Under the pieces are notes generated by a model, which saw only the letters and a list, made by a program, of their open reading frames with translations, ran no database searches and was not told the DNA's origin. A program made the position numbers and the translations under genes. From the NCBI GenBank assembly GCA_946965045.2, contig OX337228.1, positions 4,898,001 to 4,962,000 of the forward strand: a stretch of DNA of 64,000 bases. The letters are read 5' to 3'. Below are positions 1,303 to 29,017 of this stretch, one piece after another. Source of the DNA: Epithemia pelagica (Eukaryota; Protista; Bacillariophyta). The stretch's first letter is position 1. Each line of letters begins with the position of its first letter.

Positions 1303-3606
1303 ATGGATACATCAGAAACAAATACGGAAAAAGAAAAAATAGAGCAGCCCGCTCCCGATAAAAAGGACGTTGATGGACTTGCGTCGGGAGATGCCTACGA
1401 AGAAAACAAGTCCACGTCCATTGCCAAAAAGACGTCACAAACAAGAGAGTCACACGATGAAGCCTTTTGGTACAAGCTCTGTGAGCGATACAAACAATAC
1501 CAGGAAGATAATCCACAGAAGAATTGTTCTCAGAGGTCTTTCCTGAAATCGAAAGAGGCGCTGGAAGTAACTGGAGCCCCTCGAGAATGTCGAAGTTTTT
1601 CTCGCTATTGGAAAAGATTTGAACAAGGAGAACTGAACCCTACAAGTAGACGAAGGCGAAGGAGAGCCGTTGGTTATGTTGAAATTGAGGAGCGTTTATC
1701 TACTTATCTCCTTCTTCGTTCGATGATTTTTATTCGAGGCGATGTAAATGGAGCTACTTGGGCCAAACTGAAACAAAAATGTGTTAAATGGGGAGCAAAG
1801 GAATTGAAAGAACTTCAGTCTCGAGAGGAAAGTAATGAAGTTTCCCAGACCGATGTTGATTCTGTCTCAGACAAAAAGGAGATTGAGAACACAGACGGAA
1901 AGCCAAGTGATGATAAAACGGAGAAAAAATATAGCGACTTTCGTGCCTCTCCGGGATGGCTTCACAAGGTTCTGAAGCGGAACAACATAGAAGTAAGTAG
2001 TTTTGTCTTATTGGTGAGACCCATTTCTCCCAATCGATTTATGGGAGCATGGTACTCATCTTTCTTTCCGCAGTCAAAATACTTGCAAAGCGAGATGGAC
2101 GCAAAGGAAGAACACACGGCCATGGACCAGTTCATTCCTGCTTTTCATCAAAAAATGGTGGATCTTAATATAAGTGGAGGGTGCCTATACAACGCTGCAC
2201 AAACAACATTGTTCTTTCGTCAGTTTCCATCCACAAAACAACAACGTAAGAATACGAAACAGCATGCATCACCCTGCGATCGAGTTTCGTTGATGGTTTG
2301 TACAGCTGCGGATGGTACCAAACTCCCTCTCGCTGCTGTTGGTACAGCGAAATCACCTTTTGGGCAGAGTAACGATGACGACGACGAAGAAGCTGAAATA
2401 GATTTCAAGCCAAAAGGAGAAAGTGACGGAGGATCTTCTGGTTCTGCATCGGTAGATTCTAAGCCATCTCCGAAGCCTCCGATTCCGTATACAAGCCAGC
2501 CGAATGCATGGTTCGACCAAAAAACAACATTATGGTGGATTCACAACGTTTTCTGGCCTTTTCATACGGAGCAGCATGGAGACGTTCCATGCGTGTTATT
2601 GTTGGACCAGTGTCCAGCCCATGTCGACTTAGATCAGGTGGATTACGACCTCCCGCTCCCTGAGAAGTTGGAGATTTTGTATTTCCCAGTGAAAATGAGC
2701 CGGAAACGGCACCCGTCAGAAGGAGGGACAATCGGTAGCGTCAAGCTGGGTTATAAGCTCAAAATGTTGTCCAGTGTCCTCGCTCTTTTTGATTTACTGG
2801 GTGGCTTTGAAGGAGCTCAGGAACGCCATTATGGCAACGGCCACGAAAGGAATCCTTGTTCTGGCGGCCTCTCGTGTGGTGACCCGGCGACTTTATTCGA
2901 TTGTCTTTACATTCTCAAACAAGTATGGAACTCATCCACTAGATTCGCAACCACAACACTGGTACTGGAAGGATGGAAAAAGAGTAATTTGTTGCCGTCA
3001 TGGTGGGAGGAGGAAATTGATGTTTGGGTTTCCGGAGCAACACAACGACCACGACGGAAAGAAGGATGGAGTGATAAGGAGTGTGTCCAGCTTTGTCATT
3101 CTTTGCAGTCATTAGCTGCAAAGGTGGAAGAGTCAGGGCTGGAGAGACAGCAACTAGAGTCCTCCGCTCTGAAGAATTCATATGTTCTCAGACGTGCAGA
3201 AGGCGAAAATTTCCGGTCTGAAAAGGATGAGGATGTATGGGCAATGGCAAGTGCTTGGATTGAAATTGAAGATGACCCACAAGTGCGCGAACACCTTCTG
3301 GAGGACGAGTGTGATCGGGTCCTTTCACAGAGGAAACGTGCTTTGGCACTGGAAAAGTTGCTGAAGGAAGATGAAGAGCAAAAGGAAGAAGACCAAGTTA
3401 CCACTCGGTATGAACGTGTCCAGCAGGGCTTGGATGAAGCACGGGAATATGCCCAATATCTGGGAATGGATGAGAAATTACTTAGCTTACTTGACCGGTT
3501 CGAAAACAAACTCAATCAAATGGTGACAAAAATTCAAAAGGTGAAGGTTGTGGATGGGAGGAAAAAGCGTGTAAGATTGAACGTCGAGAACGTTGAGGTT
3601 TCCTAA
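1303..3606 (+). CDS. Pogo/Tigger/CENP-B-like protein (Tc5-type HTH plus DDE_1-like domain), probably domesticated and catalytically inactive
   Basis: Motifs FRASPGWLHKVLKR, LYNAAQTTLFF, RVSLMVCTAADGTKLP, YTSQPNAWFDQK, VLLLDQCPAH and ILYFP follow the pogo DDE_1 layout; probable in-frame intron 1993-2073 (GTAAGT...CCGCAG); I found no flanking TIRs. Confidence 0.8.
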   Translation: MDTSETNTEKEKIEQPAPDKKDVDGLASGDAYEENKSTSIAKKTSQTRESHDEAFWYKLCERYKQYQEDNPQKNCSQRSFLKSKEALEVTGAPRECRSFSRYWKRFEQGELNPTSRRRRRRAVGYVEIEERLSTYLLLRSMIFIRGDVNGATWAKLKQKCVKWGAKELKELQSREESNEVSQTDVDSVSDKKEIENTDGKPSDDKTEKKYSDFRASPGWLHKVLKRNNIEVSSFVLLVRPISPNRFMGAWYSSFFPQSKYLQSEMDAKEEHTAMDQFIPAFHQKMVDLNISGGCLYNAAQTTLFFRQFPSTKQQRKNTKQHASPCDRVSLMVCTAADGTKLPLAAVGTAKSPFGQSNDDDDEEAEIDFKPKGESDGGSSGSASVDSKPSPKPPIPYTSQPNAWFDQKTTLWWIHNVFWPFHTEQHGDVPCVLLLDQCPAHVDLDQVDYDLPLPEKLEILYFPVKMSRKRHPSEGGTIGSVKLGYKLKMLSSVLALFDLLGGFEGAQERHYGNGHERNPCSGGLSCGDPATLFDCLYILKQVWNSSTRFATTTLVLEGWKKSNLLPSWWEEEIDVWVSGATQRPRRKEGWSDKECVQLCHSLQSLAAKVEESGLERQQLESSALKNSYVLRRAEGENFRSEKDEDVWAMASAWIEIEDDPQVREHLLEDECDRVLSQRKRALALEKLLKEDEEQKEEDQVTTRYERVQQGLDEAREYAQYLGMDEKLLSLLDRFENKLNQMVTKIQKVKVVDGRKKRVRLNVENVEVS

Positions 3607-4092
3607 GTTGTGAAGGAAATGGTATCCTACTACTAGAGCCTCAAGAATTGCATCTTCATCGTTTCCCCCTCTTTTCCTTAGCCGAACATCCCAACTGTCA
3701 AAGATTGGAACTCTCTTTCTGCTATGCCTGATGAACCCTTGATGCTTTCCAGTAGGTCCCCCTTGAGTCATGCCCACCTCTCTGATTTGGATCTAGACAG
3801 CTGGCGTATTTCATTTCCTCCACCAGATATCAACACGACAATCAAACTTTGTTGTTGCTGGTGAGCTCCTATAACCACACCATCTTGATAGGACCATATC
3901 ATATTACATTTCAATGCCATTCTGATGCATTGGTAGAGGGGCAGAGTGCAGGTACATACAGCACGATACGACACCACGATGGTGTCATTACAATAAGACA
4001 AGAGATGTTTTTGCAAGAAAATCTGTTTTTCTCTGTTATTTACTCTTACAAATCCTCATTGTTGCCAGCAATCTTGCAATAGGGATAGGGGG

Positions 4093-4199
4093 TAGGTGAG
4101 GGGGTACCCCCCAGCGGGGGTGGCTTTGAGGGTGTAATTTCGTGTTTCAACGAAATTACTCCCTCAAAAACACTCTCGCTGGGGGATAGGTGAGGGGGT
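4093..4199. repeat. Imperfect 36-bp hairpin (4108-4143 / 4150-4185, 6-nt loop) flanked by 13-bp direct repeats TAGGTGAGGGGGT (4093-4105, 4187-4199)
   Basis: Read directly: the left arm CCCCCAGCG..TTTGAGGGTGTAATTTCGT pairs with ACGAAATTACTCCCTCAAA..CGCTGGGGG. Confidence 0.8.
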
Positions 4200-4268
4200 G
4201 TCTCAACGTAACTACAACCCCTCCGAAACCCCAGAGGTACGGGGGGGGAATTTCGGGCGAATACCATA

Positions 4269-4801
4269 AGGGCTGGGTGCACCGATCCATCAACATCTAA
4301 GTAGGCTCAGTACATTAGCCTACGTAGTACTATTTTCATGTGTGTAACAAGTGGGGCGGATGGTCGCAAATCGAAAACTTGCCGCCACGAGAAACAATGC
4401 AATCCGGAAGCCATCACTCGACAATGGTAGAAGCCGTCACCCCCATGGCCATAACTTCCTCAATAATAGAGCTCGCCTAAACCGCTTTTAGAATAAGAGT
4501 CTTCACTACTAGAGTGACTCTGCTTTCAATTCGGTCGAGGTACCGTTCAGAAATGGATGAGTTAGGAAGGTCTTTCGACTACATCACCACAGAAAAATGA
4601 GCATACCTTTTGATCCAACAGGACAAATCTTCTGTAACTGCAGAACACAGTAATATGAGCAAACTCAAACAACCTACAATGGTCAGATGTTGATGTGATT
4701 CATATGCGGCATCACCGGATCTCGCTGTCACCGTGGAGTGTTTTTGCATTTTTTCGGACTTCCCATTTCCGATATGACATGTACTATAGGATTTTATGTA
4801 C
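4269..4801 (-). mobile_element. Decayed, truncated, inverted copy of the MITE at 29972-30586
   Basis: Starts TA-AGGGCTGGGT..CCGATCCAT; internal sequence (GTAGTACTATTTTCATG, AACAAGTGGGGCGGATGGTC, GAGAAACAATGCAATCCGGAAGCCA, GGAGTGTTTTTGCATTTTTTCGGACTTCCCA) matches the reverse complement of the 30 kb element; homology stops at ~4801 before the second TIR. Confidence 0.85.
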
Positions 4802-4995
4802 TCTGGCCGAATTTGACGTACGGGCGGTCAGACCTAAAAAGCACCAAATCGGTGCACTTACAAGGAATACGGAAGCACGATGGAGACGCCCCGTCATTCA
4901 CTTTGTTCGTTGCCTACGAATACGAGCGTTATCGTTTATGAGCTAATGATAAAGGTGACGGCATTTTCAAACAATATCATAGTAGATCATAGAAC

Positions 4996-6096
4996 ATGAG
5001 TCGCAGTACGACATTGGTTCTTCTGGTGTGCGGTCTCCCTGGTTGTGGAAAAAGCACGTTTGCGAGAGATCTTCTTCGTCAAGTTAATTTTGTTCAGGAA
5101 GGATCGCAAACCTCTCTATCGAAGAAACCTTCTGTTGAGTGCCACCATATTGAATACGATCATCTACAGAATCGCCTACTTGATGATTCCCTTTCTGACG
5201 ACAACAACGAAGTGAACAATGGTGTTGTGGATCTTTCCTTGGAAGCATGGCGGAAGAGCCGCACGGCTGCGCTTGAAGAGCTGAGGAGCCTTCTACAAGA
5301 ATCCTCCAGTACAACAAAATATCGCTTAATCCTTCTTGACGACAATTTTCATCTCCGTTCGATGCGGAAACAAGTATTTAAGGTTTGTCAGAAACAAATT
5401 CAATCCGCGACAAAGCCGTCACATGTAGGTGATGACGTAGAACATTTCGTATCAAGAACAGATTCTCCTGACCGGCGCAGTATTTTGTTTGCCACTATCT
5501 GGATACAATCTACCGTGGAGACATGTCTTCGTCGCAATGCATGTCGTTCCCCCACGCGTCGTGTTTCCGAGGACACCATTCACAGAATAAAGAGTTCTTG
5601 TGAGCCTCCGATTGTTGGTTCTGAGGCATGGGAAGTCCATATCTTGTCTCTCTCCGATGAAGACAACCAATTAGACATTGTGGAGAGTTCCCTTGTCAAT
5701 CAAGCACTTTCCTTTGTGCAGTCTCTGCTTTTTGAGGATCACCAAGCCGTGTCGGCTTGTGTCCATCCTGAGGTAGAACTGGCTCGGCAGGAACGAGAAC
5801 GTGACATTACACGAGCCAGCTATGGACATCAACTTGATCAGGCGTCTCGGAAATGGGTCGGCGCAGTTGCTCAGCTTCATCCCTGTGATGCCAAGCTTGC
5901 CAACAAAATTCGAAAGAGTATGTTGCGCGAAGAAATAACTCCACCACACTTGAATGACCACAGTCAGTTAGAGAAGGATTTACCCAAACTCTTGGCACGT
6001 CGTCTTGTAAGCGAGTCCTCCGTAGACTGGACTAAATCAGAGGTAGATCAGCTGCTCCAGGTATTGAGTGAAAGTCGTAAGAGTCAAAATGAATAA
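4996..6096 (+). CDS. PSTK: L-seryl-tRNA(Sec) kinase-like P-loop kinase
   Basis: Walker A in VCGLPGCGKSTFA, LLDDNFHLRSMR motif and CLRRNACR lid, all typical of PSTK. Confidence 0.8.
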   Translation: MSRSTTLVLLVCGLPGCGKSTFARDLLRQVNFVQEGSQTSLSKKPSVECHHIEYDHLQNRLLDDSLSDDNNEVNNGVVDLSLEAWRKSRTAALEELRSLLQESSSTTKYRLILLDDNFHLRSMRKQVFKVCQKQIQSATKPSHVGDDVEHFVSRTDSPDRRSILFATIWIQSTVETCLRRNACRSPTRRVSEDTIHRIKSSCEPPIVGSEAWEVHILSLSDEDNQLDIVESSLVNQALSFVQSLLFEDHQAVSACVHPEVELARQERERDITRASYGHQLDQASRKWVGAVAQLHPCDAKLANKIRKSMLREEITPPHLNDHSQLEKDLPKLLARRLVSESSVDWTKSEVDQLLQVLSESRKSQNE

Positions 6097-21250: not shown

Positions 21251-21294
21251 GGGAGTATCCCTCCGACTAGATGTCCGCTTCTTAGCTCGTCTGT
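21251..21294 (+). repeat. Left terminal inverted repeat of the MULE
   Basis: Core CCCTCCGACTAGATGTCCGCTTCTTAGCTCGTCTGT (21259-21294) preceded by GGG-N5. Confidence 0.85.
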
Positions 21295-21434
21295 TCGGGC
21301 AAGACAAACCCAATCTCACAGACAAAAAAATCGATTGGAAATTTCTAAAAAAATGTTTTTTTTTAAATTTGACCTTTTGAACCATCACTGGAATCACGCC
21401 AGCCATCCCTTTCACATACCCTGCTCCAACTGTC

Positions 21435-24400
21435 ATGTCATTTTTCTTCATCGTCCCACCATACCAGCATCTCATCATGGCAAGCAATGAAAGTTTCCAG
21501 ACTGCAATCGACGATGCCATTCACCAACAATTCCATTGGCATGCAGAACTATATTTCAATGACGTAGAGGGCCACGAAAATCCCTTGGAACTTTTCCAAT
21601 TTACCAACAAAGAGTGCTTTACGGCGCAACGATCTACAGTCAAGCATGAGCGGAAACATCTTGTCATATTTGATCGCAAAAAGTACCCTCCTGATAAAGA
21701 TGGCATAAAGAAACTATCCATGGCTTTGAAGACAGAGGGTATTAGAAAAGGAACAAATCTCATTTCACGTAACAGCCCCCTTGTACTCTCGTGCTATCGA
21801 TGCAAGAAACACACTCCATCTCAATCAGCAGAGGAGGCCTTACACACACAGTCAAACACTCAACAGGAGCAACATTCCGCCGAATCAGAAGAGGATCCAC
21901 AATTTGATGAAGATGGCATTATGCTTGGAATACGTTCATATCGAATTCATCGCGACAAAGCCCAGGCTCGTGCCAATGGCAAAACAACAAAACGGGGCAC
22001 TTTTACCATGAGACCTATTCAGTCGGACCAAACTTGTAAGGTTTCTCTGCGGCTTGGGGTTCAAGAAGGACCCAATGGATATATTTTCCTAAAGCAAGGA
22101 TGTGGCCATGCAACACACAGTTTCCATCCGAAACCATGTCCTGGGGATGTACCGTTTCAAACTCGGCATTTAAAGGACAGTACCCGCCAGCTCATTCTTT
22201 CCGCGCGCACTGCATCTACGGGAAGCACAGCAATTCGATATCTCGTACTACAAAATCAACACGAGCTTGTTGGAAGAGGAACAATCCAGCACATTCAGAT
22301 GGTTCCTGAATTCCTCCGACATCCATCAGAGAACCATTCCACTGCATTTGCAATGGTTAGTTGGTTAAGAGAAAAATCCCAAGATTCATCAGTTAATCTT
22401 CGCTATTGTTTCTTGTCTTGCAATCCTCTTCATGATCCTGGTTATCATTGTCACCCAAAAGGACGCCCACCTCAGCAAGGCCGTATTTCCATAAAAGAGG
22501 TTCGAAAGAACATGGAGTACGATGATGTACTTCAAAGCACCTTCCGAGTTGGTGGACCAAATACCGAAGAGAAACAGGAATCTCATACAATTTCCCACAA
22601 TGACGATTCCTTACATCAAAGTGTCAAACTGACCCGCACACTCCATAAACAGTTCCATCTTGGAGATGAGATGTCGAAAAGAATTTTCCTTGGTTCTGGA
22701 TGGGTTGACGCAGAATCATTTGCTCAATTTCAACGTTTTCCTGAAGTTCTATTCATTGATTCCACGCATAAAACCAACAATGAAGCCCGTCCACTGTTAA
22801 TGGTATGTGGCCGTGATCAATGTGGCAAAGCATTCGTTATTGCCCGTATCTTCATGCCGAACGAGACAAGTGCCTTCTATCGATGGATTTTTCTTAAGTG
22901 TTTGCCAAATATTCTTGGTACTGAAAATCTGGCTCGTGTGCGAATGGCAATTACCGACGGAGACGCTCAAGAATTTGAGGCAGTGGAAGAATCGTGTCTT
23001 GAACTTTTGACTAATGCCAAAAGAGGCAGATGCATGTACCATATTGTGCAAAAGACATATGAGCGATATATATCCAACCACATTTGCCGTAATCAATCAG
23101 GGCATATGGTTTTGAAGGGGATAAAGGCGTGGATCTACACATGGGGTGATGGTTCGTCATGTGTGTCTGAGGACCAATATCTCTTGTCAAAGTCCTTGCT
23201 CTTGAAAAAGATACAATCCAAAGATTTTGAAAGTATGATTACAACTGATGGAATGTCGTTGATTGAAAAATGGCTCCAGGAAAAAATTATTCCCAATGAG
23301 AGGTTTTTCGTATTTTGGTCCAAACGATTCCTTCGCTGTTTTGATGAGTACATGAATAACTCAGGCGAGGCCATGAATCGTTCTTGCAAGCGTTCCGATA
23401 TTGCTGCCCGACCAAACATGACCATGGCAACATCTGCAAATGCAATGTTGAATCAGTCTATCTTAGCTTCACGCCAAAGAAAGAGTGATCAGTTGCGCCA
23501 ACTTGTTGAGATACCACTATACATAAAGTCAAACTCCCAACATAATCTGGATGCACTCAAGAAAATCAGTAACTTGGCTCGTCACATGGTAATACAGCAG
23601 TATCAACAACGCAAGGAGTATACAATTGTTCGCCATGATAAAGTTACTTGGTATGTTCTTCGGAATGGTGTTACAGCAGGATCAGAGTTTAACCACATTG
23701 GAAACTTTGGCCAAATGGGGCTTGCTCCACCTTGTTTCAAGAATGCGTGGAAAGTCAACTTAGATTCATGTGGTATCCTCATATGCAACTGTGGATATAA
23801 ACATCGACATGGTATACCCTGTCGTCACTTATTCGCAATTGAAGAAGAATATAATTTGTCAGACATTGCAATACGTTGGCAATTGGCATATGCATACTAC
23901 GCCTTTGATCAAAATTGTCATTCGATTACTGCATCATATGTCAATGCAATGGAGGTCGATCACCAAGGACTCAAACTTAAAACTCAAATTGAAACTGAAA
24001 CCAGTATGGTATTTCCATATATCTGGTCAGGGACCCAGTATACCATAGAGGAGATCTATGAAGTCGTGAATAGCTGTATCCCTGTCTGTTGGAACTATTC
24101 CATTGATGAATATCCAAAAGAATACCAAGCCACTGAAAAAATCTCTAGTCAACAAGCGGTGGGTGACTCCGGCTCTCTGACAATCGAGGATGATATTGCT
24201 TTGGCACAGTCACATGAAGAAACAGATTTCGAACATTTCCAGTATACACAAGAATCCGTGGAGTGCCCCAATCATCAGCTTTCTTTCCCGATAAATCGAG
24301 AAACCACCCAAGCTGAAATTATAACTGTCCTCAAAGATATGTTGCCGCTCTTTGATAACAATCTATCCCGTTACAAACTGTTGCAAGTTCTCCTTAACGC

Positions 24401-24620
24401 TCGGCAAGAACAGAGTAAACAAATACTCCAACGGCAGTCAACTGCGTCACGTCGACAATGGACAGGGACGTCTGAAAGATCCCGATCTATTCTTGCAGAG
24501 AACAGTGCTGTCCCTGAGGACCATACCACCTTTGTTTCATCGAATGTTCCTTTCGACCAAAGCAAAACAAGTAGCCAGTGTACGTACAGACAAAACAGAA
24601 ACAAAAGAATGCGGAAGTAG
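21435..24620 (+). CDS. MULE transposase with FAR1/WRKY-like N-terminal Zn motif, DDE core and SWIM finger (ATG at 21435 or 21477)
   Basis: FPEVLFIDSTHKTN (D1), AITDGDAQE (D2), RCMYHIV (CxxH), NNSGEAMN (E) and SWIM CNCGYKHRHGIPCRHLFAI in an uninterrupted 1061-codon ORF. Confidence 0.95.
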   Translation: MSFFFIVPPYQHLIMASNESFQTAIDDAIHQQFHWHAELYFNDVEGHENPLELFQFTNKECFTAQRSTVKHERKHLVIFDRKKYPPDKDGIKKLSMALKTEGIRKGTNLISRNSPLVLSCYRCKKHTPSQSAEEALHTQSNTQQEQHSAESEEDPQFDEDGIMLGIRSYRIHRDKAQARANGKTTKRGTFTMRPIQSDQTCKVSLRLGVQEGPNGYIFLKQGCGHATHSFHPKPCPGDVPFQTRHLKDSTRQLILSARTASTGSTAIRYLVLQNQHELVGRGTIQHIQMVPEFLRHPSENHSTAFAMVSWLREKSQDSSVNLRYCFLSCNPLHDPGYHCHPKGRPPQQGRISIKEVRKNMEYDDVLQSTFRVGGPNTEEKQESHTISHNDDSLHQSVKLTRTLHKQFHLGDEMSKRIFLGSGWVDAESFAQFQRFPEVLFIDSTHKTNNEARPLLMVCGRDQCGKAFVIARIFMPNETSAFYRWIFLKCLPNILGTENLARVRMAITDGDAQEFEAVEESCLELLTNAKRGRCMYHIVQKTYERYISNHICRNQSGHMVLKGIKAWIYTWGDGSSCVSEDQYLLSKSLLLKKIQSKDFESMITTDGMSLIEKWLQEKIIPNERFFVFWSKRFLRCFDEYMNNSGEAMNRSCKRSDIAARPNMTMATSANAMLNQSILASRQRKSDQLRQLVEIPLYIKSNSQHNLDALKKISNLARHMVIQQYQQRKEYTIVRHDKVTWYVLRNGVTAGSEFNHIGNFGQMGLAPPCFKNAWKVNLDSCGILICNCGYKHRHGIPCRHLFAIEEEYNLSDIAIRWQLAYAYYAFDQNCHSITASYVNAMEVDHQGLKLKTQIETETSMVFPYIWSGTQYTIEEIYEVVNSCIPVCWNYSIDEYPKEYQATEKISSQQAVGDSGSLTIEDDIALAQSHEETDFEHFQYTQESVECPNHQLSFPINRETTQAEIITVLKDMLPLFDNNLSRYKLLQVLLNARQEQSKQILQRQSTASRRQWTGTSERSRSILAENSAVPEDHTTFVSSNVPFDQSKTSSQCTYRQNRNKRMRK

Positions 24621-24907
24621 ATTCCTATTCCACGACACGAGTGGTACGTGCTCCATAGGACACGTTATGACGGGATTACTGTAATGCAACAACGAAACAC
24701 TTCTGAAGACAAATTATGCCAAAGGGTTGGCTTTGATTAGCAATAGTAGTTTTCTCACTTCATGGATTTGTAGGAGAGTCAATAGTTACCAAACGCACCC
24801 TCACAGAAATGGGTCTTCTGAAACGCAGACAACAACACATGCTCTATAGGTCATAAGGCACAACAAAGAAGCATTTCCAACAATAAATCATATCAAAAGT
24901 ACTACTT

Positions 24908-26587
24908 TTAGGAAGTAGATGCCAAAAAGTTGACAATACACTCTTCCAAATCAGTCAATGGCAGGTTATTGTCATTTTTCCCAACGACAGCAGTCTTCAA
25001 GTACACAGAGAGACAAAGGACATCTGTTTCCACCACCCTCTTCGAAACACAATGGTGAACCTGAGGATTGAAAATCAAAATGTCTTGGTTTCGTAAAGCA
25101 ACTTTTTGGCCAAGTCCTGGAAAAACAAAATAGCATAACACTTCGTCACGATTTGGATTTGCCTCATCGGTCATTGCAACAACTGCCGAATATCCAAAGT
25201 CTTGGTCCTTATGTGCAGCTAAGAATACATTTCTTCCAAAAGCAATGGCCGAAAAAAATGTTGTCGGTTGTTTGATATCTTCTGATGAGAGAGTAGGAAT
25301 CTTTTGGATTTCTCTCATGTTTGCGCCAGCAAAAACCACTGACCAATCCATCCATTGACAAAAACTTTCCTCAATCTGTTTGACATATCGCACCAAGGTT
25401 GTCTTTTCTGTTTTCTTCAGTTTGCTAAGTTTCGATTCAATAAGACCACGCCCTCCACGATTGGCATGTACTCCCACGGTGATATAGCTGGATGCATGTG
25501 ATTCGTGACCGACAAAACGAGACTTGCCTCGTTGCTGTTTTGGAAATATACCTTCAAGCTTTGTTAAAGCAGAAACCAAACGCTTTTGCACACATTTGCT
25601 CGTCAGCTCTGGATTGTATGGAGCTTTTACAAAAATTGGTTGAGTGTTTGGATTCGGACGGAAAATTGCTCCCTCATCACCCACATCTGTTGTTGCAAAC
25701 ATTGACAGAGATTGAAATCTTGGGACAGTTGCACCTTTTGTTTTGTTTAGAGCGTAGTATTTGTCATTGGACTCCTCTTCCTTAAAAACAAAACAATGTC
25801 GGTCAAGCAAACTTTCATCCATCCGGCATTCGGTAGGAGCTTCTTTCACTTGGTGGTTGATCTCAATCCTGCTTGTTTTCTGGCTACGTCGTTTCCTTTG
25901 TTTTGGGCTACGTGGTTTGGAGCAAGCTTGGAGAACAGCCTCTGCAACTCTGGTTCTCTTCGAAGAGTTTCTGTTTGATTGGAACGTGTACACCATGGAA
26001 GTAACGTCTATTCTCTTTGCATCCATTCCCATGTTGAGATTCTGCATGATCTGAGTAGAAGATAATCCTTTAGCTCTTCCCGCCCTTGGTTTCATCTCAT
26101 CCTTTGAGGATGAATCCACCTTGGGCAAAGCGGTGAGCCCCTTTTTGCCTGGAAGGCGCGGGGCCAATCTGCCACTCTTAAGGAAGGCTTCAGGATCACC
26201 CACAGCACCAGTGGACAACTTCTTCACAGACGACTTGAGACCATCTCCCAATGCCATTCCCGCCCTTGGTTTCATCTCATCCTTTGAGGATGAATCCACC
26301 TCGGGCAAAGCGGTGAGCCCCTTTTTGCCTGGAAGGCACGGGGCCAATCTGCCACTCTTAAGGAAGGCTTCAGGATCACCCACAGCACCAGTGGACAACT
26401 TCTTCACAGAAGACTTGAGACCATCTCCCAATACCATTCCCGCCCTTGGTTTCATCTCATCCTTTGAGGATGAATCCACCTCGGGCAAAGCGGTGAGCCC
26501 CTTTTTGCCTGGAAGGCACGGGGCCAATCTGCCACTCTTAAGGAAGGCTTTGCAAGGGAAAAGATTACAATTATTGGATGATGCCAT
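24908..26587 (-). CDS. 2OG-Fe(II) dioxygenase, TET/JBP-like, with N-terminal 60-aa tandem repeats; the 5' end may extend by splicing
   Basis: HxD in FLAAHKDQDFGYS, the strand run YFVFPGLGQKVALRNQDILIFNP and distal His in VHHCVS fit the double-stranded beta-helix order of TET/JBP enzymes. First ATG is at 26587; the track start at 26617 is TTG. Confidence 0.7.
   Translation of the reverse strand: MASSNNCNLFPCKAFLKSGRLAPCLPGKKGLTALPEVDSSSKDEMKPRAGMVLGDGLKSSVKKLSTGAVGDPEAFLKSGRLAPCLPGKKGLTALPEVDSSSKDEMKPRAGMALGDGLKSSVKKLSTGAVGDPEAFLKSGRLAPRLPGKKGLTALPKVDSSSKDEMKPRAGRAKGLSSTQIMQNLNMGMDAKRIDVTSMVYTFQSNRNSSKRTRVAEAVLQACSKPRSPKQRKRRSQKTSRIEINHQVKEAPTECRMDESLLDRHCFVFKEEESNDKYYALNKTKGATVPRFQSLSMFATTDVGDEGAIFRPNPNTQPIFVKAPYNPELTSKCVQKRLVSALTKLEGIFPKQQRGKSRFVGHESHASSYITVGVHANRGGRGLIESKLSKLKKTEKTTLVRYVKQIEESFCQWMDWSVVFAGANMREIQKIPTLSSEDIKQPTTFFSAIAFGRNVFLAAHKDQDFGYSAVVAMTDEANPNRDEVLCYFVFPGLGQKVALRNQDILIFNPQVHHCVSKRVVETDVLCLSVYLKTAVVGKNDNNLPLTDLEECIVNFLASTS
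26077..26550. repeat. Coding tandem repeat, 180-bp period, ~2.6 copies
   Basis: Unit starts TTCCCGCCCTTGG at 26077, 26257 and 26437; encodes AFLKSGRLAPCLPGKKGLTALPEVDSSSKDEMKPRAG... on the minus strand. Confidence 0.97.
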
Positions 26588-26611
26588 AACACAATCACTA
26601 GAGTCTTGTTG

Positions 26612-27757
26612 GAACAAAAGCAGGGTACTGTTAGAATGGTCGTTGCCTGTAGTTTATTGAGCTGTATTGCATTGTCTTGTAGCACTTACCGTTGGAAAGT
26701 TATGGATTGACAGAGGACTAGAAAACAAAACAAGGGCAGCTCCAAAGGAAAATTGCAATCAATGATAGCTCAGGCCACCAATCTCGCCTGAACAAAAGCA
26801 GGGTACTGTTAGTATGGTCGTTGCCTGTAGTTTATTGAGCTGTATTGCATTGTCTTGTAGCACTTACCGTTGGAAAGTTATGGATTGACAGAGGACTAGA
26901 AAACAAAACAAGGGCAGCTCCAAAGGAAAATTGCAATCAATGATAGCTCAGGCCACCAATCTTGCCTGAACAAAAGCAGGGTACTGTTAGAATGGTCGTT
27001 GCCTGTAGTTTATTGAGCTGTATTGCATTGTCTTGTAGCACTTACCGTTGGAAAGTTATGGATTGACAGAGGACTAGAAAACAAAACAAGGGCAGCTCCA
27101 AAGGAAAATTGCAATCAATGATAGCTCAGGCCACCAATCTCGCCTGAACAAAAGCAGGGTAGTGTTAGAATGGTCGTTGCCTGTAGTTTATTGAGCTGTA
27201 TTGCATTGTCTTGTAGCACTTACCGTTGGAAAGTTATGGATTGACAGAGGACTAGAAAACAAAACAAGGGCAGCTCCAAAGGAAAATTGCAATCAATGAT
27301 AGCTCAGGCCACCAATCTCGCCTGAACAAAAGCAGGGTACTGTTAGAATGGTCGTTGCCTGTAGTTTATTGAGCTGTATTGCATTGTCTTGTAGCACTTA
27401 CCGTTGGAAAGATATGGATTGACAGAGGACTAGAAAACAAAACAAGGGCAGCTCCAAAGGAAAATTGCAATCAATGATAGCTCAGGCCACCAATCTCGCC
27501 TGAACAAAAGCAGGGTACTGTTAGAATGGTCGTTGCCTGTAGTTTATTGAGCTGTATTGCATTGTCTTGTAGCACGTACCGTTGGAAAGATATGGATTGA
27601 CAGAGGACTAGAAAACAAAACAAGGGCAGCTCCAAAGGAAAATTGCAATCAATGATAGCTCAGGCCGCCAATCTCGCCTGAACAAAAGCAGGGTACTGTT
27701 AGAATGGTCGTTGCCTGTATTTTATTGAGCTGTATTGCATTGTCTTGTAGCACTTAC
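26612..27757. repeat. Non-coding tandem array, 178-bp period, 6 full copies plus one partial copy
   Basis: Unit start AACAAAAGCAGGGT at 26613, 26791, 26969, 27147, 27325, 27503 and 27681; copies differ by only a few substitutions. Confidence 0.98.
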
Positions 27758-28040
27758 AGTTGTGGAGTTGCAAGTTGGGCTGCAATTGCTTCTTTTGCTG
27801 CTGTTTGCTGTGGTCGGAGGGTCTTTTTGGTGAGTTTTTGTTGGTTGTGGGGCGGGGAGAGACTGGGTCTGCTGTCTGACCTGAGTTTTCCACTGGTCAA
27901 TGGGATGTTGATCAGAAAGTTGTTTGGCAGTTGATGAGAGCGCGCCAGCCTGTCCCTCGGAGGGCCTGCGCGTTGGGAGGGAAATTTTTGATGTGAGTTT
28001 CTATATTGTACAGAAGGTCAGACGGAATGTTGGAGGCAGG

Positions 28041-28084
28041 ACAGACGAGCTAAGAAGCGGACAACTAGTCGGAGGGTAATACCC
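28041..28084 (-). repeat. Right terminal inverted repeat of the MULE
   Basis: ACAGACGAGCTAAGAAGCGGACAACTAGTCGGAGGG (28041-28076) is the reverse complement of 21259-21294 with one mismatch, followed by N5-CCC. Confidence 0.85.
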
Positions 28085-28410
28085 GTACTGCCGCCAGGTA
28101 GAATTCGATAGCGGTTAGCGTGTCTCGTGTCTCACTTTAGCAGCGGCCTCTGGTGGTAGCCTCCTATGTGAAAGAAGCAAGTTATGGGAGTAGCTGTACA
28201 AGTACTGGAGCTAACGAAGAGACGGAGGATAACTCTACCAATTTCTCTGCAACTTCCGGTAATGGACTCAAAACGTAGGTAATCCTTCTACCACTCAGAG
28301 TATCGTCACGATATAACATTTTTCATTATCACACATCACACAGTAATACCTCTTATATGATCATACTAGGTACAGATTATTTCAATATGAGGAAAACATC
28401 CAGAGTCACG

Positions 28411-28500
28411 GATGTCGGAGGATTTGGTAGATGTCGGATGATGTCGGATGATGTCGGAGGATGTCGGAGGATGTCGGATGATGTCGGATGATGTCGGATG
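28411..28500. repeat. 10-bp minisatellite ATGTCGGA(T/G)G, 7 contiguous copies at 28431-28500 plus one at ~28411
   Basis: Read directly from the sequence. Confidence 0.95.
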
Positions 28501-29017
28501 TTTTTATCGCCAAAAGAATATGTACTCTCCAGCAGTTGGAATTCTTCATGAGAAATCTCAAGGTTACAAGTCACTGATTGACGGTAGGCCCATCAACTGA
28601 AGGAGCACCGCTGGATTTTGAGGCAAACCATGTTTGCGCGCGAGCCCGAAACGACATCAAACAAGATCAAACGACATACAAACGACATACCTTTCGACAT
28701 TCCCGTTTGTTCCATACTAGAGAATGGTAAATCATATTCTATGGTATCATAATACGTACTTTGTATTAATATCGATCCTTTGTTTCGGTTTCGTCCGTTG
28801 GGTATTGGGAGAGAATATGCGACTCACGTGTAGTTACCGGAAGTTGCTGCCGCTGCACCGTAACCGTGGGCCGGACCACTCGACCGACACACAACAGACG
28901 GTGGGGCGATCGGTCGCGGTTAAAGATTTTCGTAAGGGTCAAGGCTCGAATTGTTGCCTCTTGTCTTCTTGAAAGTGTTGGTTGATCAGGGGTCCATAAG
29001 AGGATTGACACCTGAAA

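Follow-up and report, generated by a model that had tools for sequence, protein, structure and literature searches.

The 64,000-nt stretch of Epithemia pelagica DNA analysed here (the window; contig ctg1354l of ENA assembly ERZ21939226) carries an autonomous, recently mobile DNA transposon of the Mutator superfamily (a Mutator-like element, MULE), in which the transposase gene is joined by a convergent gene for a divergent Fe(II) dioxygenase of the TET/JBP family, with a tandem array of 178-nt units before the latter gene. In this genome the dioxygenase and transposase genes have moved together in no fewer than four MULE families that have diverged from one another, and it is rather likely that the enzyme oxidises 5-methylcytosine (5mC) on members of its own family and thereby counters their silencing. 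The features of the element, bounded by terminal inverted repeats (TIRs) and with its open reading frames (ORFs), are as follows, with positions given for the window:

21259-28076, no strand: whole element, 6818 bp, bounded by TIRs, ends fixed by an element-free contig
21259-21294, plus strand: left TIR, 36 nt, 97% complementary to 28041-28076
28041-28076, minus strand: right TIR, 36 nt, pairing with the left TIR
21435-24620, plus strand: MULE transposase gene, an uninterrupted ORF of 1061 amino acids (aa); the public annotation begins at Met15 (1047 aa)
24908-26587, minus strand: gene of the predicted TET/JBP-fold dioxygenase (P0001), 559 aa, convergent with the transposase gene, ATG at 26587
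24908-25915, minus strand: dioxygenase domain with conserved H-K-D, extra Asp, distal His, Tyr and Lys
26077-26550 (to 26616 at its widest), minus strand: 180-nt tandem repeat, 2.6 to 3 copies, encoding basic repeats of 60 aa at the N-terminus of the dioxygenase
26612-27762, minus strand: non-coding tandem array of 6.5 units of 178 nt (98% identity), immediately before the start of the dioxygenase gene

All parts named in an earlier interpretation of the window (the sequence-only reading) are present, namely inverted repeats enclosing an intact MULE transposase gene on the plus strand and a convergent gene with HxD...H motifs on the minus strand, and two tandem arrays (180 nt × 2.6 and 178 nt × 6.5). 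Counted from a TTG, the dioxygenase ORF spans 24908-26617 (minus strand).

The 36-nt TIR is the longest inverted repeat of the region; its two arms are the sole matches to it in the window, and the number of matches expected by chance was 0 (100 shuffles). The ends of the element lie at 21259 and 28076, because a contig from a DNA run of the same organism (X1) joins the left flank up to 21258, by way of 6 other bases, to the right flank from 28077. The ends proposed in the sequence-only reading (21251 and 28084) were therefore 8 nt too wide on each side, 21251-21258 and 28077-28084 being flank by the X1 contig. An allele without the element thus exists, which argues for a recent insertion or excision. 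In the read set, word depth at the right TIR (within 28041-28149) was 3300-5500 as against about 85-135 in the element body (30-50×), and several contigs sharing the window's TIR part company with it on the inside at 28041/28042 or on the outside at 28077; for these two reasons the same TIR is carried by many other copies, which are probably non-autonomous. In a biofilm metagenome (run X4), a contig of low depth matched the element at 95-99% and skipped 3293 nt (22642-25936), which comprise most of the transposase and the C-terminus of the dioxygenase; it looks like a deletion derivative from the same or a close species.

The transposase was matched by the Pfam families PF10551 (MULE; E 1.3e-14, above the curated cut-off) and PF21056 (E 1.5e-9), with a weak match to SWIM, and its homologues, one of them from Cylindrotheca closterium, all have PF10551 and PF21056. 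The window's transposase has the motifs FIDSTHKTN, ITDGD and NNSGEAMN in exactly the form in which they occur in two related elements (L096 and L097); by analogy, these motifs may hold the catalytic DDE residues.

On other contigs of ERZ21939226, three further elements (L001, L002 and L003) show the same arrangement of TIR, array of about 179-nt period, TET-like gene, convergent MULE/ZSWIM gene and TIR. Their second genes are the three closest relatives of the window's (45-49% identity), and the TIRs that enclose the gene pairs measure 53, 45 and 31-34 nt, with an overall range given as 31-75 nt. To the P0002 family belong seven members at ≥90% identity, spread over seven contigs, of which five are full length; three of its copies (L001, L013 and L014) are 98% identical over the length bounded by the TIRs, this similarity ends sharply at the shared terminus, and their neighbouring host genes differ. 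Among these copies the ratio of non-synonymous to synonymous polymorphism (pN/pS) was 0.31-0.50 in the dioxygenase gene and 0.16 in that of the transposase, both from small counts. The transposases form two groups, one of the window, L096 and L097 and the other of L013, L003 and L002, with 39-66% identity within and about 24% between groups. Across the families that bear a TET-like gene they are 23-66% identical, and the TET-like ORF is intact in all of these; any two of the four dioxygenases are 37-46% identical, and together they constitute one clade (support 100/100). The dioxygenase is not a one-off capture of the Pack-MULE type, which the sequence-only reading had named as the outcome that would speak against it, because the gene sits inside the TIRs of several diverged, multi-copy families. 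Nor does the element have the marks of a Pack-MULE, its transposase being intact (1061 aa) and its cargo conserved at full length in four families. It does have those by which Kojima (2025) recognised TET-carrying transposons, that is, a dioxygenase gene between the termini of a transposase-encoding transposon, in repeated copies.

Whether the two MULE clades exchanged the TET gene was considered as well. The tree pairs the window's gene with that of L013 (92/90), which would imply such an exchange, but vertical descent was not rejected by the approximately unbiased test (p 0.14). A swap of the cassette is possible, and so is a change of cargo in L096 and L097. In L002 (12325-20865), a second copy of the transposase, right TIR and flank follows about 6.9 kb further downstream, and a helicase gene (PF02399/PF13604) separates the two; a nested Helitron-like insertion or the duplication of a segment may account for this.

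The identity of the second gene was approached through its relatives and its predicted structure. Relatives numbered 11 by a word-based search and 1457 cluster representatives by a full profile search at E up to 0.001, 415 of them at E up to 1e-30. Pfam recognises none of the members of this family that were checked, and the representatives would amount to a large branch of TET/JBP enzymes that has gone unannotated. The AlphaFold model computed from the alignment (mean pLDDT 81, pTM 0.83) has a double-stranded beta-helix with a TET/JBP-type N-terminal extension and is closest to the solved TET/JBP members. When it was compared with the PDB by Foldseek, the best 25 rows were all CcTet, CMD1, TET2 and NgTET1 (E 8e-9 to 3e-6; CcTet 8e-9), with AlkB-type enzymes lower. 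In the structure comparison, scores stepped down to ≤12.7 for generic 2-oxoglutarate oxygenases, AlkB homologues and FTO, which were aligned over residues 71-310 only; the TET/JBP members clearly outscored the AlkB type and also covered the N-terminal extension, and TET2 scored above CMD1. AlphaFold DB clusters and viral models bear the names 'JBP1/TET oxygenase' and 'Tet-like 2OG-Fe(II) oxygenase', and 69 of 100 language-model neighbours in the Atlas have PF12851 (Tet_JBP), the nearest cluster being recorded from Bacillariophyta. The model thus supports a TET/JBP-fold dioxygenase that is neither AlkB-type nor metabolic. The assignment as TET/JBP-like made in the sequence-only reading was upheld, and the opposite case, a grouping with AlkB-type or metabolic enzymes, fails because the structural matches all point to TET/JBP.

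Relatives of the dioxygenase were also examined at 80 aquatic metagenome loci (L016-L095). By tblastn, a Plavaka-type transposase was found at 13 of these, in nearly all cases immediately downstream and in opposite orientation, and a MULE at 3; Pfam gave Helitron_like_N/PIF1 in 6-7 neighbouring ORFs, UCH (ubiquitin C-terminal hydrolase) in 8 and DDE_Tnp_4 in 1. On at least 8 contigs, a relative with 30% identity (P0008) and a Plavaka gene face each other convergently. Relatives also adjoin Harbinger-type genes. The nearest relative outside the genome (P0005, 35-37% identity; L004:10001-11299, ENA ERZ25039508) lies in GC-rich DNA with no MULE, transposase, TIR or long array within 10 kb, and may be a stand-alone or domesticated copy.

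The setting of P0005, without MULE or TIR, would suit a functionless passenger gained by Pack-MULE-like capture of a host or viral gene, or an enzyme acting on something other than DNA (RNA, protein or a metabolite). The capture of host genes by MULEs is established, and related MULEs hold unrelated genes in the same slot. We nevertheless regard either as very unlikely: a TET-like ORF has stayed intact in four families with transposases of only 23-66% identity, five of the seven P0002 copies are full length with pN/pS below 1, the four genes are a single clade, relatives elsewhere adjoin Plavaka, Helitron and MULE genes, and the predicted fold is nearest to TET/JBP members that flip out DNA bases.

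The HxD...H iron triad is complete in the window's gene, in whose full-length product (P0001) the HxD motif is H459 and D461. Residue conservation was counted over 112 aligned family members, with the following result for the positions of interest, all on the minus strand:

H235, 25211-25213: conserved in 110/112
D237, 25205-25207: conserved in 110/112; the H-K-D motif occupies 25205-25213
D239 (extra Asp), 25199-25201: conserved in 108/112
H288 (distal His), 25052-25054: conserved in 109/112
Y305, 25001-25003: conserved in 107/112
K307, 24995-24997: conserved in 108/112

Roles were assigned by spacing (an Asp just after HxD, an aromatic residue about 17 after the distal His, and a basic residue two further on). 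The flipped 5mC is contacted by D350, F416 and R418 in CMD1, by Y1902 in TET2 and by F295 in NgTET1 (PMC7854593). By their spacing D239, Y305 and K307 appear to sit where these three enzymes hold the flipped base, which would favour cytosine as the substrate. N1387 and H1904 of TET2 and D234 and H297 of NgTET1 we take to be the equivalents of the CMD1 contact residues.

A trace of methylation is visible in the elements themselves. The observed/expected ratio of CpG was 0.62 in the window's element (0.36-0.39 in its repeats) as against 0.91-0.92 in its flanks, and 0.60-0.69 in four other elements as against 0.87-0.93; GpC was not depleted in the window's element, the sole element in which it was measured. 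CpG depletion is what CG methylation of the elements would be expected to leave behind, and because it points to such methylation the presumed substrate of the enzyme is present. The depletion accords with diatom methylomes, as summarised in PMC12344493, where 5mC is largely confined to transposons.

In the mechanism that we favour, oxidation of 5mC by the element's own enzyme, the protein would enter the nucleus, a candidate signal being the conserved stretch rich in Lys and Arg that precedes the domain, and would flip out and oxidise 5mC on the elements of its own family. This mark would then be lost or converted, and the promoters of transposase and dioxygenase would stay active. The array would hold the promoter of the dioxygenase together with 5' exon units, and possibly a recruitment site for the enzyme.

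Arrays with periods of 178, 179, 179 and 179 nt are found in the four TET-carrying families, always directly upstream of the dioxygenase gene. Their copy number varies from 2 to 8 and is unequal even among copies that are 98% identical. Counting families with and without the TET-like gene, five MULE families of the genome besides the window's own have an array of 175-180 nt in the corresponding position. The units can hardly be aligned across families (only L002 with L003 clearly above shuffles); short motifs nonetheless recur in the same orientation, for example ATAACTTTC, followed a few bases on by GTAAGT. Every 178-nt unit has one GTAAGT on the sense strand and none on the antisense strand. 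The units resemble the 5' end of the annotated gene of L003 and the start of the window's dioxygenase ORF, and the array may consist of repeated promoter and 5'-exon units. A model in which the 178-nt units are in-frame exons around a 43-nt GTAAGT...CAG intron was rejected, stops being present in all frames after its removal, as was a kinship of the 180-nt coding repeat with the 178-nt array, between which no similarity was found. N-terminal or 5' tandem repeats are common in the loci of the metagenomic relatives, several of them in-frame (90-192 nt).

A number of observations weigh against a self-protecting 5mC oxidase on a mobile MULE. The CpG depletion shows that the elements were methylated despite the enzyme, and hence are not fully protected. 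None of the read sets matched was an RNA-seq run holding the dioxygenase gene, X1-X3 being genomic DNA. By sequence the enzyme went unrecognised in the libraries used: no Pfam family was matched by the C-terminal 330 residues at E up to 10, the whole protein gave nothing useful, neither Tet_JBP profile (PF12851 or PF20515) recognised it, and the family profile met only a chance ribosomal match among PDB sequences. As regards the carrier, target-site duplications (TSDs) are absent at all 5 copies defined by TIRs, which is atypical for a MULE; they were sought by eye, in a gapped alignment of the ends and in a brute-force scan (offsets of ±12 nt, lengths of 4-12) for direct repeats of ≥4 nt at consistent offsets. 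With the defining TSD of 8-11 bp lacking, the transposase and the TIRs are all that marks the element as Mutator-like. The element-free allele is known from a single contig of a single run (X1).

Further points of the same kind concern the cargo. Within this genome the nearest relatives of the transposase, in L096 (56% identity) and L097 (39%), are accompanied by an unrelated convergent second gene. Because these elements keep an array at the same place (180 nt × 23.5 in L096, 175 nt × 3.8 in L097), the array belongs to the accessory-gene slot of this MULE group and not to the dioxygenase as such. The second gene of L096 (L096:7995-17040, ctg1301l) encodes 750 aa and is multi-copy; in L097 (L097:7956-13348, ctg1248l) the ORFs are of 335 and 195 aa. 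Searches with the L096 product gave no Pfam match, an hhalign probability of 0.1%, an AF2 model with pLDDT 29, an Atlas score of 0.77 and only two homologues.

The last of these points lies in the active site. Six residues before the conserved Tyr, the position that is taken in TET2 (R1896) and NgTET1 (R289), at the start of the last core strand, by the Arg for the C5-carboxylate of 2-oxoglutarate is Val, Ile or Leu in all 112 members; because it is hydrophobic, the co-substrate, and with it the chemistry, could differ. The enzyme might then be a writer rather than an eraser, making a hypermodified or oxidised base as CMD1 does (5mC to glyceryl-methylcytosine, with ascorbate) or as JBP does (hydroxylation of thymine). 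Such a base would label the element, block maintenance methylation or recruit factors, and the co-substrate would possibly not be 2-oxoglutarate. CMD1 is likewise without a working Arg at this position (PMC7854593), and for divergent fungal types the possibility was left open by Kojima 2025 (PMC12730594). A writer is, all the same, unlikely in our judgement. R275 (95 Arg and 8 Lys among the 112 members) and R293 (His+5; 85 Arg and 12 Lys) may stand in for the missing Arg and could bind 2-oxoglutarate from another strand or loop; TET2 scores above CMD1 in the structural comparison; and the element contains no glycosyltransferase or other partner gene.

A role of the dioxygenase in transposition or damage repair was also weighed, in which, instead of keeping promoters active, it would clear methyl or alkyl lesions at the TIRs to allow binding of the transposase, or mark donor and target sites. 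Methylation-sensitive TIR binding, known for some plant transposases, would fit such a role, as would the activity of CcTet on N6-methyladenine as well (PMC12730594). With TET/JBP scores well above those of the AlkB type, coverage of the N-terminal extension, and nothing in the sequence that ties the enzyme to the TIRs, it is highly improbable.

A wider proposal, doubtful at present, is that a clade of diatom MULEs possesses a modular counter-defence cassette, made up of an accessory gene and a length-constrained array of 175-180 nt, whose TET/JBP cargo, found in at least four families and without the canonical 2-oxoglutarate Arg, erases 5mC, or turns it into another base, specifically on its own array and promoters. 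If true, this cassette would be a case of self-targeted enzymatic epigenetic escape outside fungi and plants, possibly with a new base chemistry. We know of no described demethylase in diatoms; because of this, and because diatoms methylate their transposons at CG, the dioxygenase genes are obvious candidates for active 5mC turnover in these organisms. Oxidation of 5mC by the element's own enzyme would, if true, mean that enzymatic counter-silencing by mobile DNA arose or spread well beyond fungi, and the conserved array of about 178 nt and the unusual co-substrate pocket offer concrete experimental handles.

The surroundings of the element in the window are ordinary eukaryotic genes (Dis3/Rrp44, an AAA ATPase and CBF/Mak21), and no Rfam family was matched in or beside it. 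Two 10-nt tandem arrays, mutually inverted and about 150 nt apart, begin 335 nt beyond the right TIR, with GATGTCGGAK × 9 at 28411-28500 and AAACGACATC × 3.9 at 28649-28688. Within the 10-nt unit lies GTCGGAGG, which recurs at 28068-28075, one base short of the outer end of the TIR.

Several known systems can be set beside this element. Maize MuDR (mudrA/mudrB) is a TIR-bounded Mutator element with two genes transcribed convergently from its ends, and a Mutator transposase with a convergent second gene between TIRs is what is seen here; mudrB, however, is no dioxygenase, and MuDR has TIRs of about 200 bp and TSDs of 9 bp as against a 36-nt TIR and no TSD in the window. The Arabidopsis MULE VANDAL21 encodes VANC, which acts through repeated motifs to counter the silencing of the family that encodes it (cited in PMC12730594). 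With a tandem array next to its accessory gene, the window's element suggests a comparable logic, of which the co-location of array and gene is the only part seen here; VANC is not an enzyme of the TET/JBP fold, and the arrays of the diatom elements also stand beside unrelated genes (L096 and L097). CcTet, NgTET1, TET2 and CMD1 are the best structural matches of the predicted dioxygenase, over about 220-290 residues, and share with it the HxD...H triad and, by spacing, the 5mC-contact Asp, Tyr and Lys; unlike in these enzymes, to which identity is only 10-14%, the Arg for the C5-carboxylate is not at its expected place.

The closest parallel is found in fungi. TET/JBP genes were reportedly described on fungal KDZ transposons by Iyer et al. 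in 2014, and to our knowledge the function of fungal TET/JBP-carrying transposons has never been tested. Kojima 2025 places TET/JBP genes on fungal DNA transposons of ten lineages; MuDR features there solely for its VANC and SET genes, and hosts other than fungi are not mentioned (PMC12730594). As in the fungal transposons, the dioxygenase gene of the window is part of a DNA transposon and adjoins the transposase gene, occurs in multi-copy, diverged families and across several superfamilies, and has an escape from methylation-based silencing as its proposed role; distant relatives of the window's protein are, moreover, convergent with Plavaka genes. The host here is a diatom and the carrier a MULE, and no conserved array of about 178 nt has been reported for the fungal elements, the word 'tandem' being confined to the reference list of that paper (PMC12730594). 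The PE type of Kojima, marked by HxE (PMC12730594), differs from the present enzyme, which has HxD (Asp in 110/112). A full-text search of the literature for TET/JBP together with diatom, stramenopile, Mutator or MULE returned no MULE-TET/JBP pairing, in agreement with the sequence-only reading, and no TET-carrying transposon outside fungi. While the TET-carrying transposon as such is known from fungi, the host lineage, the carrier superfamily (MULE), the unannotated enzyme subfamily and the conserved array are new.

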